64,000 nt of DNA, from the sequence record NC_042056.1. The stretch is one strand, 5' to 3'. Made by a program: the position numbers and the translations under genes. Below the pieces are notes generated by a model. That model saw nothing but the letters and a program-made list of their open reading frames with translations. It was not told where the DNA came from and made no database searches. How positions within the stretch are numbered: position 1 is the stretch's first letter; each line of letters begins with the position of its first letter. Positions 3,885-61,465 of this stretch are shown here, piece by piece.

Positions 3885-4636
3885 TGCAGAAGTTGCACAG
3901 CCAAACGCTTGTGATGCACACCGCGCAGTTGGTGGAGTCGATGGCGGACTACGCGTTTCTCACGTATGTGAAAGACCGTGCACGGTGTCAGGTGGAAGGG
4001 ATTCCACCGTTTGATTGTCGTGAGATTGGGAAGCAGGCCATGGCGGAAGTCGTGGCTGAACTCCTGCTCGATGCGATCATGGGAATTAACGCTAACACCG
4101 GTTTCAGTTATCGCGGCGTCGTGAAGATGCCGGTTATCCACACTGAGAAGTATCAGAACTGGCGTGATTCAGGTAATTGTGGGATGTTCACCGTCGAAGA
4201 GATGTTTGACGCCCATTGTCGCGAGTTACCACTGGGGCCACTCATCGAAGGCGCTATCCGCTGGTACACCAGTGAGTTTGTCAACGAGATCATGGCACTG
4301 ATCAACAACGATTGGTACTGTGACCGAGAAAATGAACTCGTTATCTTTACCAGTCGTGAGTTGCTCGTGAAGCAGATTCTCAACGGGACGGTGGTGTTGC
4401 CATTGCTGGCGAAGGAAGATTACGAATTTGCCGCTGAGGCGGACAGCTTCGAAGCAATTCGTGACGAAGTCTTCCAATGGCCATACTCGTTTGTCACCCA
4501 AAACGAGATGAAGGTGTTGCACGAACGTATTCCGTCTTTCATCCTCTCGCCAGAAGACCAAGATTCCGATGAAGACCCTACGGTCGAACTCTACGTCTTG
4601 AAGCCAGAAGTGATTGATAGAATCAAAAAACTCTGA
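3884..4636 (+). CDS. Hypothetical protein
   Basis: 250-aa ORF, TAATG-coupled to RNase H. Confidence 0.75.
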   Translation: MQKLHSQTLVMHTAQLVESMADYAFLTYVKDRARCQVEGIPPFDCREIGKQAMAEVVAELLLDAIMGINANTGFSYRGVVKMPVIHTEKYQNWRDSGNCGMFTVEEMFDAHCRELPLGPLIEGAIRWYTSEFVNEIMALINNDWYCDRENELVIFTSRELLVKQILNGTVVLPLLAKEDYEFAAEADSFEAIRDEVFQWPYSFVTQNEMKVLHERIPSFILSPEDQDSDEDPTVELYVLKPEVIDRIKKL

Positions 4637-4657
4637 GATAGATATTATCTTGGTGAG
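4636..4657 (+). promoter_or_regulatory. Candidate early (virion RNAP) promoter, copy 1
   Basis: AGATAGATATTATCTTGGTGAG; one of five aligned intergenic copies, resembling the phiKZ early consensus TATATTAC. Confidence 0.65.
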
Positions 4658-4678
4658 CAGTCTATAAGGAGTATCAAA

Positions 4679-5413
4679 ATGCTTCGTGTCAACACCCCCG
4701 AACTCCTTCTCTTTAACCCCTCGCTTGTCGAGGGGTTGTTCGACAAGATGTGGGAGCGATACTTTAGAGAGGAGATGAATTCTGACCCGTGGTGGGAACG
4801 CTACCGTGGTGACTTCTTTCTGGACTCTTCGCAGATTACGCTGGATGTGTTCAGCCGCTGTGTCGAAGAAGTAGTACAAGCTGCAAACCTGCGTCGTCCG
4901 ATGGACTTCAATTACATCACGTTTGATTTTTCATGGTACATGGACAATTACAACTACGAATGTGATTTGGGGATAGACGACCAAGAGAAGATTGAAAACA
5001 AGATGTTTGATTTCTTCCACTTTGCAATTAACCAATTGGTTTCACAGGAGTTCTTAGATGCGGCATGCAAACGACTAACCCCGACATGGGAATCCTTAAC
5101 GGAACTCGTGGGGCAGCGTGGCATTGTGGGCTTCTGGTACGAACCCTGTCAAGGCCAGATGCACATGGACTCAGGACGTGACCACGTCTGGGCGGTGCAA
5201 GAAGGGGATTATGACGCTGAGCTGTATGCTGAGTGGCAAGGTGCGGTTGCAGGCACACTCTTTTACCACGCCACCATTGGCGATGGTAATGAGTTTTATT
5301 TATTTAATGGGTCGCTTATCCAAGACGGACAAACACTTGACCACATCCCACTTGGGGAGATGGTGACACTGTGTCGTCTGACTGAACAAGCACAAACTAT
5401 CATTGACCTTTAA
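4679..5413 (+). CDS. Hypothetical acidic protein
   Basis: 244-aa ORF, AAGGAG RBS. Confidence 0.8.
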   Translation: MLRVNTPELLLFNPSLVEGLFDKMWERYFREEMNSDPWWERYRGDFFLDSSQITLDVFSRCVEEVVQAANLRRPMDFNYITFDFSWYMDNYNYECDLGIDDQEKIENKMFDFFHFAINQLVSQEFLDAACKRLTPTWESLTELVGQRGIVGFWYEPCQGQMHMDSGRDHVWAVQEGDYDAELYAEWQGAVAGTLFYHATIGDGNEFYLFNGSLIQDGQTLDHIPLGEMVTLCRLTEQAQTIIDL

Positions 5414-17194: not shown

Positions 17195-17854
17195 ATGTCA
17201 TTTCTTGACACCATTGATGAACTGGAACGGGGTGAAGAAGAAGGTGTCATGAAAGTGGCACGGGAATCTATCTCGACCGAAACTGAGAAAGAGTATTGTC
17301 TTTGGGTGAAGCCCACTGCGGAAGGCTGGGAGTGGCTACGTGAGCAACAGGCGTCGATGTACGTTGACACCCTGATGCCCATTAACCGTGGCAAGCGCCG
17401 TGTGCGGTTAACCGAAGACCATAAAGCTGTGCTGACCGTGAAGCGTTTTGCTGACGAAGGGTGTATCGAAGAGAACTCCGATATCGGGTTTGATACGGCA
17501 CTTACCTTCTATCAGGACGACTTCGTGTCGCATTTGGTTAAACGCATCCATTTACCCGCGGGTGAGTTAGAAGCCAAAGGCGGTAAGCATTGGGACATTG
17601 ATGTGTTCTACCGTGCCGGTGGTCATCCACAACTGCTGAATGCAGACGACTACGACGCACTGCTCAACACCATGAAGCAGGGCAGCTCGTACGGCGAGTG
17701 GGTGAAGGTGGAATTGGAAGTAGAGCGGTTTGAAATGGAATCGATTCGCGAACACATTCCGTTTGCGGTTGAAGACGTCATTCCGTCGCGCCCAACCAAG
17801 CCCGAAGACCAGGAGTTCATTCGCAACTACTGGGACGTGGACACACGGCTGTAA
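17195..17854 (+). CDS. CYTH/triphosphate-tunnel-like protein with putative propeptide
   Basis: ETEKEY (ExExK-like), RVRLT..LTVK, IEE, VKR, WDIDVF, KVELEVE. Confidence 0.65.
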   Translation: MSFLDTIDELERGEEEGVMKVARESISTETEKEYCLWVKPTAEGWEWLREQQASMYVDTLMPINRGKRRVRLTEDHKAVLTVKRFADEGCIEENSDIGFDTALTFYQDDFVSHLVKRIHLPAGELEAKGGKHWDIDVFYRAGGHPQLLNADDYDALLNTMKQGSSYGEWVKVELEVERFEMESIREHIPFAVEDVIPSRPTKPEDQEFIRNYWDVDTRL

Positions 17855-17941: not shown

Positions 17942-18370
17942 ATGAATACACTGTCTTTCGAAGCGGGTAAAGGGTTAAGCGTTAACGGACATCTGGTACC
18001 GGACACCAACAACCACCATTTTGAAAAGCTCTACCGTCGTATCGGGGTAGGGCGTAAGGTCAACCTGAAAATCACCAACGAGATTGCCCTCAATGGCAAC
18101 GTGGCGGCTTTAGGTCCGATGTATGGCTTCCGTCCAAGCCAAGATGCAGCAGCTGCCCTGTTGCAGCACGGTGAGTTTAGCAGCGGTGTGTACGCGTTCC
18201 GTTTACTCGGTTCGCTGCGTCGGGTGTCGAACAAACACGTTGGTCAGGGCATGACACCGACCGTCTTACAGAGCGGTGAGATTATTGTCCTCGTACATTC
18301 CAATCACGAATATAAGTCGGGTTTGGATTTCATGATTAGCTATTCCGAAGTGGAGAGTGCAGATGTCTGA
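17942..18370 (+). CDS. Hypothetical protein
   Basis: 142 aa, AGGGA RBS. Confidence 0.72.
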   Translation: MNTLSFEAGKGLSVNGHLVPDTNNHHFEKLYRRIGVGRKVNLKITNEIALNGNVAALGPMYGFRPSQDAAAALLQHGEFSSGVYAFRLLGSLRRVSNKHVGQGMTPTVLQSGEIIVLVHSNHEYKSGLDFMISYSEVESADV

Positions 18371-19247
18371 TAAAGCTTACCCCGTCTTAAAGAACTTTGA
18401 ACGTGTCGATGCGTGGAACAACGATTCCGACATTTATCGTCACGGTAATGTCCATCAGCAGTCTCTGAAAATGTATCGCCATCTTGGTGAGCTGTGTGAG
18501 GGTGTCCAGAAAATGAAACAGCTGGACGTGGCCTCCGCAATGGGCAAGTTTGTGGTGGCATTGGTCGGCGTGGCGTCCTTTGCAGGGGTTGACGCAGAGG
18601 AGCTGGATGAGCTTTACAGCTACGCGGGCAGAAAAGCTACTCCGTGTACCCCAGCGCAAGCTGCGTGCAATCTGGTGCGTTCTACGACCTCTATGGTTAA
18701 CGATATCAACCAGTGGTTGTCTCCTGCTGGTACTCAGATGGCCAGAGCGATTGCAACGTCCTCTATCTGCGAAGTTTTCTGTTTACTGAAACAGAACGCA
18801 TCCCTCAATGCTATCGTGTTAGACCGCACCATTGAGAACGCCACGAACGTGCTCTGCGCGAAGAAAGGCAAGATGGATGAGTTCGGTTTGTTCCATGCAG
18901 AAGAAACCACCATTGCCACCTCCAGAACCGGTTTTGTCCATCGCGGTGTGGGCGAGTGGATTAAATTGGCCATCAATCGAGATTTGGAAGGTCGCTTCGC
19001 AGAGCTGACCTCGCAGTTGCAGTTCGAATCGAACAGCGGTGAAGTCAGGCTGCGGGTTGAGGAGTCGATGAACAGCCATCTTGAGTTTTCTTTGACCAAA
19101 CACGTTCGCATGAAGCCTACCGTTAAGCACCTTCTTAATGGTCTTACCCCGGCAGTCGTGGTGACGCAAGAAGGTAACCGTCTTGATGTTACGTCTAACA
19201 GCGATCTGCAAACGTTGTTCACTGAATTGGAAAAGGTAACCGAATAA
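18363..19247 (+). CDS. Degenerate MazG-like (all-alpha NTP-PPase fold) protein with extra C-terminal domain
   Basis: Gapless by-eye alignment with 22390-23223, but EEDGE reads RHLGE and DGIGD reads SAMGK. GGAG RBS supports ATG18363. Confidence 0.7.
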
Positions 19248-20308
19248 TGAAACAGTATTTGGAATTGATGCACACCGTGTTGAACGAAGGGCACGAGAAA
19301 GCTGACCGTACCGGCACGGGCACCATCTCTATTTTCGGGCATCAGATGCGTTTTGACCTGCGCAAAGGGTTCCCGCTGGTCACCACCAAAAAGCTGCATC
19401 TGCGCTCTATCATTCATGAGCTATTGTGGTTCCTGAACGGGGATACCAACATTCAGTATCTGAAGGATAACAACGTCAGTATCTGGAATGAATGGTCGGA
19501 TGAAAATGGCGACCTTGGCCCTGTGTACGGACACCAGTGGCGCGAATGGGCAGATGTCAAACTCGTCAGTCACTGGGACGAAGCGTCCAAGAAAGTGTTG
19601 TACGATCGTGGTTATCAGTTCAGCGGGGCTATCAATCGTGATGACCCATCTAAAACGCTGGCGGTGCTTACTAAGCGCTTTGACCAAATCCAAACGGTTA
19701 TTGACCAGTTGAGAAACGACCCGGACAACCGTCGCATCATTGTCAGTGCATGGAACGTGGGGGATTTGGACGACATGGCGCTAGCGCCGTGCCATTCCTT
19801 CTTCCAGTTCTACTCCCGCCCGATGATGGGCAAAGAGCTGGACGTGTATCTGGCGGAGTACCTTAAAACCGATGCGCGTTTGGCAGCGAAACACGCCGAA
19901 CAGGTTGCCCTTTGTGAAGCTGACCCGCAAGGGGATCACGTTAGCTCGCACATGTTCTGCCTGACCAACGATATACCGACGCGTGTACTGTCCTGTCAGC
20001 TTTACCAGCGCAGCGCAGACGTCTTCCTCGGCGTCCCGTTCAACATCGCATCTTACGCGCTGCTGGTTCACATGGTGGCACAACAAGTCAATATGGTGGC
20101 GGGTGATTTCGTCTGGACCGGTGGTGATACCCATCTGTACTCGAACCATCTGGAACAAGCCACGTTGCAGCTCTCCCGTGTGCCGCATGACCTGCCCAAG
20201 CTCGTCATCAAACGTAAGCCCGATTCTATCTTCGACTATAAGTTCGAAGATTTTGAAATCGTCGGTTATGAATCGCATCCAGCGATTAAGGCCCCGGTTG
20301 CTATTTAA
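19247..20308 (+). CDS. thyA: Thymidylate synthase
   Basis: [60 protein letters not shown]. coli-like, with two in-frame insertions. Confidence 0.97.
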
Positions 20309-22169: not shown

Positions 22170-22334
22170 ATGTCCCAAGTAGAAAAAGAAGTCATCGCAC
22201 AAGCAGATACCACCACACTGGACGATTTGTTCGGGGGTGATATTCCGGGCGTGGATGAGAATGCAGTAGTTGAAGGTGGTGTTGATGCGGCCGCTGAAGA
22301 CGACAACTGCGCAGGCGGTGCCTGCAAAATTTAA
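22170..22334 (+). CDS. 54-aa acidic peptide ending in an NrdA-like redox tail (CAGGACKI)
   Basis: Translated by hand: MSQVEKEVIAQADTTTLDDLFGGDIPGVDENAVVEGGVDAAAEDDNCAGGACKI*. GAGG RBS at 22160-22163 and its own downstream hairpin; fills the gap between two genes. Confidence 0.85.
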   Translation: MSQVEKEVIAQADTTTLDDLFGGDIPGVDENAVVEGGVDAAAEDDNCAGGACKI

Positions 22335-22389: not shown

Positions 22390-23223
22390 ATGCAACAGAC
22401 TTTTGAGTTACCGATTGAACACAAAGCCATCATCCTGAATAGCGCTATCTTAGATTTCGTCATGCCTCAGTTGGCGGCTGCCGGTAAACGGATGTCTCGC
22501 ATTACGCGTCTGGCACTCAGCAGTGAAGGCCCACAGACGCTGGTTAACGGTTTTACCTTTGAAGGTGAACCGGCAGAATTCCACGCGATGTTGCGTTATC
22601 ACACCGCGCTCGACTTCCACAAAGAGCCGGTCTACCATAACCGCATCGTCCCGCTGTACCGTGTGTCACAATGTGTGGCCAAAGTCATTGGCTGGTCAAC
22701 TGACCGCGGTATTCTGGAAAACGGCCGTTGGGACTCACAGGGTACGAAGCTGTATGAAGAAGACGGTGAAGCCGCAACTGGCGTGGGTAAAAACAAAAAG
22801 CGTCTGATCATCGACGGTATCGGTGATGCGCTGGTTGTACTCGTTAACGTACTGGAACTGACCAGTATTGATGCCGCAGAAATTGCGCACATTTATCAGC
22901 TGGTACGTGACACCAAAACCGTGGTGGATAACCCGCACTACCATTTCCACAAAATGCGTAAGAACCTGACCGAAGTGGTCGATGTGGTTTATGAATGTGA
23001 AGCCATCGATTCACCGAAGAAAGTGGAAATCGGTCGCTTAACGCACGATGAGCGTCAGCAGATGTTGGGTCATGCGCAGCAGGCAATCCATCATGCCAAC
23101 CAACTGGCACGCCATTACGATTACTCGCTGGATGAGTGCTTCTCTCTGGCGTGGGATGAAATCAAAGACCGTAAAGGTTTCCTGAACGCTGACGGTGTGT
23201 TCATCAAAGAAGCCGACGCTTAA
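22390..23223 (+). CDS. mazG: MazG-like nucleotide pyrophosphohydrolase
   Basis: W.TDRG, Q.TKLYEEDGE, IIDGIGDALVVL, LDECFSLAWDEIKDRKG..GVFIKE; acidic motif intact; ~90-aa N-terminal extension. Confidence 0.85.
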   Translation: MQQTFELPIEHKAIILNSAILDFVMPQLAAAGKRMSRITRLALSSEGPQTLVNGFTFEGEPAEFHAMLRYHTALDFHKEPVYHNRIVPLYRVSQCVAKVIGWSTDRGILENGRWDSQGTKLYEEDGEAATGVGKNKKRLIIDGIGDALVVLVNVLELTSIDAAEIAHIYQLVRDTKTVVDNPHYHFHKMRKNLTEVVDVVYECEAIDSPKKVEIGRLTHDERQQMLGHAQQAIHHANQLARHYDYSLDECFSLAWDEIKDRKGFLNADGVFIKEADA

Positions 23224-59801: not shown

Positions 59802-60932
59802 ATGAAGAAATTACTCAGAAAACAAGACTGGAATCATAAGTACCATTCCCCGGAGTTCGACAAGTCCACACCAGTGGTTGTCTGGAAACTCGACCACGGT
59901 TGTCTGTGCACCTTGCGCAACGTGGGTGGGATGGTCGTAATTGAAAATGGCACCTATTCTGCCGCCAACACCCTACTGGCTCGCTTGCTGGCCGAAGCGG
60001 GTATCACTGGGGACATCACCATTCATACCACGGCACTGATTCCACAGAACGTGTCTCGTTGGTTGACGTGGTGGTTGTCAACGGAGCCGGAAGAGGATGA
60101 CCCGCATCTGCGGACACTCACCGTTTCAACAATGGGGCAGATTCCCACAAAGAAACTGCCATTCCAAGTAAACGTAATTAAACCCGCGACAATGGCAGCC
60201 TACGAAGTCCTCGACTACGTACGCCAAAGTTCTCGCAACCCCTCTGTCTCACAATTCCTTGTGGAACACGGGGAACAGGTATACCGTCTGGAACCAGAAC
60301 GTCGGACGGAGGCAAAGATTGTAGACTGTACGTCACGCGGATATGTTTTACGTACCCAGTCCAATCACGTCTTCTTAACGAATATGGTCTCGAGACGGAT
60401 ACAGGCGCAACTCAAGGCTAAGAACTTGAGGCCCGAAAACCTCATCGGTGCCACCGTGAGGGTAGAGTACACAATGTTTACCGACGGGAACCGTCTGTGT
60501 AACTATAAGTCACCCATTGTGTATCGCTGTACCGATTTGGACACATTGTGTCCAGATGCCATCCCCCCATACGATGGTCCCTTCATGTTCATTAGTAACC
60601 AGCCATCCAACAACGCGCTGTTAACAGCCACCAGATGTGGACGGGCGAGGATTACACAAAACGGGGATTCTATCATTGGGTGCGATGGGGAGTCCGAACT
60701 GCAACTGTTCCGCTTCACCAGGGGCGTCGAGGACGGCTGCTATGCAGCTACCCTTGAGCGACAAGGGCAGTCGGAGGATTGGCGCTTTGAATCTGATTTG
60801 GCTACAGACGCACTCGATCCGGATGCGTTCGTACGTTGTGTGGAAAACCACCTTTACCACACAACAGGGTATCGCCTACAGGGAATCAGACTCAAATACG
60901 TTGATAGGACAAACACCCCAACGATGACATAG
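59802..60932 (+). CDS. Hypothetical protein, possibly a degenerate ATP-dependent DNA ligase fold
   Basis: VVWKLDHG (KxDG-like) and OB-fold-like RLEPERRTEAKIV…LIGATVRVEY..FT.G. ORF confident, fold tentative. Confidence 0.6.
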   Translation: MKKLLRKQDWNHKYHSPEFDKSTPVVVWKLDHGCLCTLRNVGGMVVIENGTYSAANTLLARLLAEAGITGDITIHTTALIPQNVSRWLTWWLSTEPEEDDPHLRTLTVSTMGQIPTKKLPFQVNVIKPATMAAYEVLDYVRQSSRNPSVSQFLVEHGEQVYRLEPERRTEAKIVDCTSRGYVLRTQSNHVFLTNMVSRRIQAQLKAKNLRPENLIGATVRVEYTMFTDGNRLCNYKSPIVYRCTDLDTLCPDAIPPYDGPFMFISNQPSNNALLTATRCGRARITQNGDSIIGCDGESELQLFRFTRGVEDGCYAATLERQGQSEDWRFESDLATDALDPDAFVRCVENHLYHTTGYRLQGIRLKYVDRTNTPTMT

Positions 60933-60943
60933 GAGTAAACGCT

Positions 60944-61465
60944 ATGCTTGCTACACCTACCTGTACTGCCCAAAACGTAAACGGTCTGCGTGTAGTTTGC
61001 CAGGATAATAGACTGGCAAATCTGTGTGATGAAGGTATCATCACCGCCATGATTAACTACAACCCATTGGGAGACTACGGTCGCCGCAACCCCACCGAAC
61101 TGCTGTCTATCGCAGCGGTAATTAAGCGCATCTTCGGGAGCCTCACGGTTGCTGAATTTAGTCGTTTCATCGACAGCCGAGAAGACATCTCGGTCGGTTT
61201 CTTAGCCCTGCTGCAAGACGGTGCAGCCTCATTTGAAATGGGCTTAGGTAACTTCCTTGACTTTGAGTCAGGATTCGAAAACGGGGTGTTCTTCGTAAGT
61301 CGAGACCGCTACAATGGCGTTTGGAACTATCTGGCTAGATCAGGCGTCAACGTTCCGCCCAGTATCCGCAATATGCAGCTGTATGATGTCAACATCTTCG
61401 GAGAACCGGGGTTGTGGATCAAACCTGTCTATCTAGGAACTGACGGTTCTAGTATCCGTTCGTAA
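60944..61465 (+). CDS. Hypothetical protein
   Basis: 173 aa, AGGAG RBS. Confidence 0.78.
   Translation: MLATPTCTAQNVNGLRVVCQDNRLANLCDEGIITAMINYNPLGDYGRRNPTELLSIAAVIKRIFGSLTVAEFSRFIDSREDISVGFLALLQDGAASFEMGLGNFLDFESGFENGVFFVSRDRYNGVWNYLARSGVNVPPSIRNMQLYDVNIFGEPGLWIKPVYLGTDGSSIRS

Follow-up and report, generated by a model that had tools for sequence, protein, structure and literature searches.

A MazG-like pseudoenzyme candidate conserved beside thymidylate synthase in SPN3US-like jumbo phages

The Erwinia jumbo phage Machina (NC_042056, Machinavirus, 241.6 kb) encodes, immediately 5′ of its thymidylate synthase gene thyA (gp242), a protein, gp241, that on sequence comparison represents a new, catalytically dead and domain-fused subfamily of phage MazG-like proteins. 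Both genes lie in a 64,000-nucleotide stretch of the genome, described here as the window, together with gp247, which is annotated as “mazG nucleotide pyrophosphohydrolase” and is found 3.1 kb further downstream. Over 7 kb around gp241 the sequence agrees with the Machina record at 100% identity. A sequence-only reading of the window had taken gp241 for a catalytically stripped MazG homologue tied to thyA, and this characterization is borne out: the predicted fold matches, and the metal ligands are lost family-wide. Defined operationally by homology, loss of catalytic residues and purifying selection, the assignment of gp241 as a pseudoenzyme is well supported by these sequence comparisons.

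The N-terminal ~180 residues of gp241 are homologous to phage MazG-like pyrophosphatases, with a similarity far beyond chance. BLASTP aligns gp241 to gp247 over 80 residues without gaps (25/80 identical, E 2e-6), confirming the ungapped alignment that had been made from the letters alone, and it pairs RHLGE of gp241 with EEDGE of gp247, and SAMGK with DGIGD, exactly the substitutions that had been proposed. Among PHROG families, gp241 matches phrog_10269, of unknown function, over nearly the entire profile (E 1.7e-132, residues 3-295 on profile positions 1-298 of 299), followed by three MazG families, phrog_7855 (E 1.4e-12), phrog_715 (1.3e-8) and phrog_1992 (3.1e-8). Reciprocally, gp247 matches phrog_10269 with an E of 6e-12. 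No Pfam family matches gp241 at E≤1, MazG (PF03819) and dUTPase_2 included, nor does any NCBIfam model. The match of gp247 to Pfam MazG is itself weak (E 0.022, under the gathering score); its status as an intact enzyme is instead drawn from its PHROG matches and the conservation of its motifs.

Relatives of gp241 were found by a profile search over 1.84 billion representatives, where a word-based protein search returned only 5 close relatives. The profile search recovered 17 gp241-family clusters (E≤1e-29) and then, after a sharp gap, ~75 canonical phage MazG-like proteins (E 1e-10 to 1e-3), which bear PHROG and Pfam MazG signatures. A profile built from these active relatives matches solved MazGs (1vmg, E 3e-5; E. 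coli MazG, 4e-4), lining up EExGE/DxxGD with the EEVGE/(E)LxD of the solved proteins. When PDB sequences were searched with the gp241-family profile, only a designed helical repeat was found and no MazG, and the same search with gp247 alone gave nothing useful.

Structural modeling places the N-domain in the same superfamily. In an AlphaFold2 (AF2) model built from 11 family sequences, with a mean predicted local distance difference test (pLDDT) score of 80, gp241 has a helical N-domain (residues 8-166) that ends in a small β-hairpin (169-179) and is joined through a disordered linker (181-193) to a C-terminal domain of its own. Foldseek searches of the PDB with the full model yielded no match at E≤0.001, and only weak rows for dimeric dUTPases at a probability of 0.7-0.9. 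Compared by VIA-align against 48,161 PDB chains, the three top-scoring structures are all dimeric dUTPases (1w2y, Z 10.1 over 154 residues; 5myd, Z 10.0; 2yay, Z 9.0), followed by the MazG 1vmg (Z 7.2) and, lower down amid unrelated helical chains, by the HisE structures 1yvw and 3c90 and the MazGs 2yxh (Z 5.8) and 7yh5. The dimeric dUTPase, MazG and HisE matches are all members of the all-α nucleoside triphosphate (NTP) pyrophosphohydrolase superfamily, and the gp241 N-domain is predicted to share its fold, in line with the MazG-like fold that had been expected. The possibility that gp241 is itself a dimeric dUTPase (PF08761) was rejected, given the lack of any Pfam match at E≤1 and an identity of 6-11% in the structural alignments.

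In MazG enzymes the carboxylates of the EExxE...(E/D)xxD motif are the ligands of Mg2+. To count residues at these sites, sequences were aligned to the family hidden Markov model and numbered as in gp241; the counts cover 72 distant active relatives, 8 jumbo-phage MazGs and 18 representatives of the gp241 family (≤50% identity). The motif is absent from the gp241 family. E40 is present in 72/72 of the distant relatives, D58 in 70/72 and D62 in 72/72, all three occur in 8/8 of the jumbo-phage enzymes, and each is found in 0/18 of the gp241-family representatives, which carry H/Y/T/S/C/M, A/S/K and N/K/R/Q/E/G at the respective positions. E43 persists in 7/18 of the family, compared with 71/72 and 8/8 of the active groups. 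Position 39, mostly E or S among distant relatives and E in 8/8 jumbo-phage MazGs, is R in 16/18 gp241-family members; position 161 (W or Y, and W in 8/8) is variable; and position 163 (mostly E, and E in 8/8) is occupied by V/A/S and others. The net shift across the former metal site is from acidic to basic.

The gp241 family forms a single clade in a maximum-likelihood tree (Shimodaira–Hasegawa-like approximate likelihood ratio test, SH-aLRT, 100) on a long stem branch of 0.95. This monophyly and the long stem together indicate that the catalytic residues were probably lost once, early in the history of the family, and that stasis followed. The tree also places gp241 and gp247 within one phage MazG-like clade. 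The description of gp247 as the intact paralog of gp241 therefore stands in part: it belongs to the same clade and its motifs are intact, but the tree does not show its lineage to be the direct duplication partner of gp241.

In four close Machinavirus genomes, the ratio of non-synonymous to synonymous substitution (dN/dS) of the N-domain is 0.035-0.11, compared with 0.036-0.14 for thyA; the N-domain is thus under strong purifying selection comparable to that on thyA. Eleven residues are kept from the active enzymes, namely W18, Q33, K36, G42, K50, G61, A160, K/R167, G169, G175 and F177. Others are gains specific to the family: R39 (16/18), E46 (17/18), Q49 (15/18), and L54, R155 and N159 (each 18/18). 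Within an alignment of 27 sequences, R155, N159, L54, G42 and G61 are invariant. The conserved positions of helix 2 (32/33, 36, 39, 43, 46 and 50) follow a helical periodicity and fall on the catalytic face of the active relatives. Selection on the substituted pocket, which the earlier reading had made a test of its proposal, is therefore evident both in the substitution rates and in the conserved residues on the former active-site face. The same reading had matched a C-terminal stretch of the domain (residues 167-177) to RKGFLNADGVF of gp247; in the profile alignment K/R167, G169, G175 and F177 are indeed conserved across all groups.

Not every member retains the full set of residues, and R39 and E46 are each missing from some. 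The most divergent example is a split form on a contig (L017:4454-4999), whose 181-residue N-domain protein lacks W18, Q33, K36 and the KKGxMxExGxF hairpin and retains only the DRVxxN helix with R155 and N159. As the sole motif left in this protein, the R155/N159 helix is suggested by these comparisons to be the functionally essential part of the N-domain.

The association of gp241 with thyA proved stronger than originally claimed. We examined 19 loci, from 12 named phages and seven metagenomic or IMG/VR contigs; the IMG/VR scan found 7 loci with the family alignment and none with the single gp241 sequence. The named phages are Machina, Huxley, SNUABM_43, SNUABM_10, ChrisDB and Caitlin (Machinavirus), EC001, SPAsTU and SNUABM_29 (Seoulvirus/SPN3US group), Asesino (Erskinevirus), and Kwan and Wellington (Wellingtonvirus). 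The N-domain gene stands immediately 5′ of thyA in 19/19 loci, without a frameshift or stop in any of them, and its stop codon overlaps the thyA start by 1 nt in 11/19. One further contig has the same gene order according to its called-gene table, and the adjacency is maintained in a contig with different upstream genes. An active MazG gene follows 2-4 kb downstream at every locus that reaches that far. As far as seen, the gp241 family is limited to SPN3US-like jumbo phages. The neighboring gene encodes a genuine thymidylate synthase (Pfam E 4.8e-116, with NCBIfam equivalogs above cut-off), the catalytic Cys/Arg motifs of which are invariant among orthologues; the TAATG junction described for Machina is present, and the coupled gene is what it had been taken for.

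The extra C-terminal domain that had been noticed is an independent module. Folded alone from 9 sequences, it reaches a pLDDT of 92 and a predicted template modeling (pTM) score of 0.84, and comprises two long helices and a short one, followed by a β-hairpin and a final helix. Its comparison with PDB chains gave a flat list with a best Z of 6.0, BFVD gave matches only within its own family, and Pfam, PHROG and the ESM Atlas gave no usable lead; the module is thus predicted to be a well-folded domain that is new to structure and has no recognized relative. Its distribution is equally independent. It is missing from the Wellingtonvirus proteins and from Caitlin, and in two contigs it is a gene of its own between the N-domain gene and thyA. 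A metagenomic, SPN3US-like contig (L016) carries the module twice, once fused (4141-5001) and once as a stand-alone gene of 112 residues (5001-5339) before thyA. Among close relatives the cassette of linker and C-domain has a non-synonymous divergence (dN) of ~0.55, compared with 0.05 for the N-domain, and the dN/dS of the C-domain is ~0.2. Since nucleotide identity falls to about half within the cassette and is near-complete in its flanks, the alignments indicate that linker and C-domain are probably exchanged as a cassette among near-identical phages.

What might such a protein do beside thyA? We tentatively favor, at somewhat short of an even chance, the reading that gp241 is a non-catalytic and probably nucleotide-binding accessory of the phage thymidylate (dTMP) pathway that associates with ThyA. 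Its N-domain would descend from the phage MazG-like branch of the all-α NTP pyrophosphohydrolases, and the whole family, having lost its Mg2+-binding carboxylates in what appears to be one ancient event, is predicted to be without metal-dependent NTP hydrolysis. The old active-site face would still present Q33, K36, K50 and K/R167, to which the arginines R39 and R155 appear to have been added where the relatives are acidic or polar. The change of the site from acidic to basic is therefore read as a sign of direct, metal-free phosphate binding, and the N-domain may bind a phosphate-bearing ligand, probably a deoxynucleotide, and leave it uncleaved. The protein would be co-made with ThyA from a predicted translationally coupled gp240-gp241-thyA unit and could act as an adaptor, sensor or regulator of the dTMP-synthesis machinery, with the swappable C-module as an optional interaction domain. 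That gp241 binds a ligand, is in physical contact with ThyA and exerts a regulatory effect is in each case what we infer from these patterns. Thymidylate synthase is normally unregulated. A bolder proposal, which we regard as doubtful, is that gp241 is a metal-independent deoxynucleotide sensor docked on ThyA, an allosteric or channeling subunit whose C-module retargets its partners, or else a sponge for stress or immune nucleotides.

Context for this reading comes from the surroundings of gp241, where genes of nucleotide metabolism, thyA and an active MazG among them, are clustered. In the genome of Huxley, a phage of the same species (Machinavirus machina) that has ~90% of the window's sampled 31-letter words in common, Pfam detects neither a trimeric (PF00692) nor a dimeric (PF08761) dUTPase, and so gp247 may be the only dUTP/dCTP-cleaving, and thereby dUMP-supplying, enzyme of these phages. 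The gp241 protein may be the remnant of an ancestral dUTPase-ThyA pairing, the catalytic job of which has passed to gp247.

Several observations weigh against an accessory role at ThyA. The ThyA of Cronobacter jumbo phage CR5 is 62% identical and carries the same insertions; this phage also encodes a MazG, and it has no gp241 homologue. As this ThyA occurs without a pseudo-MazG, ThyA does not need gp241. Among close relatives, the C-domain types do not co-vary with the ThyA insertion types, and that two genes are neighbors is, taken by itself, a weak argument for binding. It could also be that the new arginines do no more than pair in salt bridges across the former metal site, in which case no pocket would remain. 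Moreover, Z scores of 9-10, being below 13, are not decisive alone for helical proteins, and count here through their agreement with the sequence evidence.

Other functions have to be weighed against the same data. If gp241 were a sponge for nucleotides or alarmones, whether (p)ppGpp, (p)ppApp, cyclic oligonucleotides or dNTPs, serving anti-defense or host takeover, its proximity to thyA would amount to no more than a common time of expression, early or middle. The residues retained (Q33, K36, K50, K/R167) and the arginines gained on the old active-site face would suit such a role, as would the dispensability of gp241 in the related CR5 and the mosaic exchange of its C-domain among near-identical phages; cassette exchange of this kind is often seen at phage-host conflict interfaces. 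However, neither PADLOC nor any other search gave a defense-related match for gp241, no defense or anti-defense genes were recognized around it, and the dN/dS of its C-domain does not amount to positive selection. A sponge would also leave both the strict adjacency to thyA and the frequent translational coupling unexplained. We consider it unlikely, and the alarmone or cyclic-nucleotide sponge suggested by the sequence-only reading has thus found no support. Of similarly low probability, in our estimate, is a regulatory or dominant-negative role in which gp241 forms mixed oligomers with gp247 or a host MazG-type enzyme, and tunes or blocks hydrolysis. All-α NTP pyrophosphatases are obligate oligomers, MazG-type proteins forming dimers or tetramers; gp241 and gp247 have the helical-hairpin core and the C-terminal β-hairpin motif in common, and their genes co-occur at every locus long enough for both. 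Yet gp241 is coupled to thyA and not to gp247, from which 3 kb separate it; the identity of the two proteins is only ~31% over 80 residues, and the long stem branch implies extensive divergence of the surfaces.

Two further readings differ in whether the domain retains any activity at all. The new residues might form a pocket (R39, E46, Q49, R155 and N159) for catalysis without metal, acting on a nucleotide upstream or downstream of the ThyA reaction. They are conserved as catalytic residues are, with R155 and N159 in 27/27 sequences, the N-domain has a dN/dS as low as that of ThyA, and a long stem followed by stasis fits neofunctionalization. Against this, some members have no R39 and some no E46, while the L017 split form dispenses with most motifs except R155/N159; moreover, we know of no all-α NTP pyrophosphatase that works without the acidic metal site. 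An enzyme with changed chemistry thus seems quite improbable to us. At the other extreme, gp241 could be a decaying and functionless duplicate, the reading frame of which is kept for the signals that couple the translation of thyA. In its favor are a C-domain that varies and can be dispensed with, the very degenerate N-domains of some lineages and the lack of the gene in CR5. This reading is contradicted by the selection data, and we give it very little credence: the N-domain is constrained at the rates given above, residues are invariant across 18 clusters (≤50% identity) from four phage genera, and none of the 19 loci has acquired a frameshift or stop. On balance, an accessory of the dTMP pathway that associates with ThyA remains the reading we prefer.

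Table 1. Coordinates of gp241, its domains and motifs, and neighboring genes in the window.
Feature	Position	Strand	Description
gp240	17942..18370	+	142 aa, phrog_9744, unknown function
gp241 (pseudo-MazG)	18363..19247	+	294 aa, annotated hypothetical protein, phrog_10269
N-terminal all-α NTP-pyrophosphohydrolase-like domain (predicted)	18363..18908	+	residues 1-182; AF2, VIA-align and PHROG matches
RHLGE	18477..18491	+	residues 39-43, in place of the EExGE metal-binding motif
SAMGK	18534..18548	+	residues 58-62, in place of the DxxGD metal-binding motif
R155...N159	18825..18839	+	family-invariant, on the helix bearing AW(D/N)EI in active relatives
Hypervariable cassette (linker and C-domain)	18842..19200	+	~50% nucleotide identity, flanks 90-99% identical
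β-hairpin motif	18861..18893	+	residues 167-177, common to active MazG-like proteins
C-terminal module	18945..19244	+	residues ~195-294, ~100 aa, no recognized solved fold
gp241/thyA stop/start overlap	19243..19249	+	TAATG
thyA (gp242)	19247..20308	+	thymidylate synthase, two lineage-specific insertions
gp247	22390..23223	+	MazG-like pyrophosphatase; acidic motifs EEDGE, DGIGD and WDEIKDRKG all intact

The gp241 gene starts at ATG 18363, with a GGAG 7 nt 5′ of it, and ends with a TAA at 19245-19247; its ATG overlaps the end of gp240, the stop codon of which is TGA, by 8 nt (ATGTCTGA). A search of sequencing runs found no RNA run that contains this stretch. The gp240 gene (dN/dS 0.01-0.07) is present upstream of the pseudo-MazG at most, not all, of the loci examined. 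Paralogy among gp240, gp249 and gp250 was considered and rejected, as BLASTP shows no mutual similarity. Two genes upstream of the pseudo-MazG lies gp239 (17195-17854, 219 aa; phrog_7768, of unknown function), which is strongly conserved (dN/dS 0.02-0.06) and encodes 219 residues, or in a few cases 218-220, at every related locus; Pfam gives no CYTH match for it at E≤1. Just 5′ of the active MazG is a small open reading frame (ORF), gp246 (22170-22334, 54 aa), with the C-terminus ...CAGGACKI, and an ORF of 51-69 residues is kept at this position in most related loci examined.

The thyA gene itself contains a hypervariable segment at 19562-19730 (residues ~106-160), with another at ~20181-20259 in SNUABM_43. 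In the variable segment, Machina is 28-38% identical to close relatives, compared with 85-99% in the flanks, and Huxley and SNUABM_10 are 84% identical there. The core of ThyA, which bears the catalytic residues, is invariant. The ThyA insertions sit after W101 and after Y189, and CR5 has both. The insertions were considered as a mark of gp241 dependence and rejected as such, since the CR5 ThyA has them without a pseudo-MazG; co-variation of the C-domain with the ThyA insertion was likewise rejected, the cassette types being mismatched. Huxley encodes a dihydrofolate reductase (DHFR) at 60672-61193. In Wellingtonvirus, the active MazG (L007:7437-8819, which is Kwan gp261, and L012:7745-9127) is 460 residues long and bears a C-terminal extension of ~170 residues that the other genera lack; the pseudo-MazG of this genus is the form without a C-domain.

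Our literature search found no paper that mentions gp241 or a MazG pseudoenzyme, and to our knowledge no dedicated accessory subunit of thymidylate synthase is known in bacteria or phages. The conservation of a pseudoenzyme beside thyA in at least four SPN3US-like genera points to an unrecognized layer of control or organization in phage dNTP synthesis, and gp241 would offer a natural example of an NTP pyrophosphatase pocket rebuilt, from carboxylates to arginines, after the loss of catalysis. Its closest known counterparts are the phage MazG-like pyrophosphatases (phrog_7855, phrog_715 and phrog_1992; gp247), which have the same N-domain scaffold residues, helical hairpin and C-terminal β-hairpin. 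Unlike these, the gp241 family has replaced E39 with R, E40 with H/Y/T, D58 with A/S, D62 with N/K/R and E163 with V/A/S, has lost W161, and has gained R155/N159, an extra C-module and a fixed place 5′ of thyA. The solved MazGs (S. solfataricus 1vmg, E. coli 3cra, T. maritima 2yxh and B. subtilis YpjD 2gta) share the core helical hairpin with gp241, which differs by an insertion of ~70 residues, comprising three helices, and by its lack of the catalytic motif. Dimeric dUTPases (C. jejuni 1w2y, Leishmania 2yay and S. aureus phage 5myd) are the best structural matches, with 141-154 residues aligned, but gp241 has neither appreciable identity to them nor a match to Pfam dUTPase_2. Dimeric dUTPases are active enzymes whose acidic metal ligands are intact. 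A dUTPase would be the natural supplier of dUMP to ThyA, and the dUTPases of staphylococcal phages have a signaling role through protein binding, as the title of 5myd also states.

Two further systems invite comparison. In MazZ-PurZ of Z-genome phages, such as cyanophage S-2L, an active MazG-like gene stands beside the gene for the enzyme that uses its monophosphate product. This offers a precedent for pairing a MazG-like protein with a nucleoside monophosphate enzyme, whereas in Machina the copy adjacent to thyA appears dead, and 3 kb separate it from the active one. The T4 dNTP-synthetase complex contains the dCTPase/dUTPase gp56 together with thymidylate synthase and dCMP hydroxymethylase. 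T4 gp56 is active; the likeness to Machina, for which such an association is only proposed, lies in the idea of an NTP-pyrophosphatase-type protein placed physically beside thymidylate synthase, where precursors are channeled.

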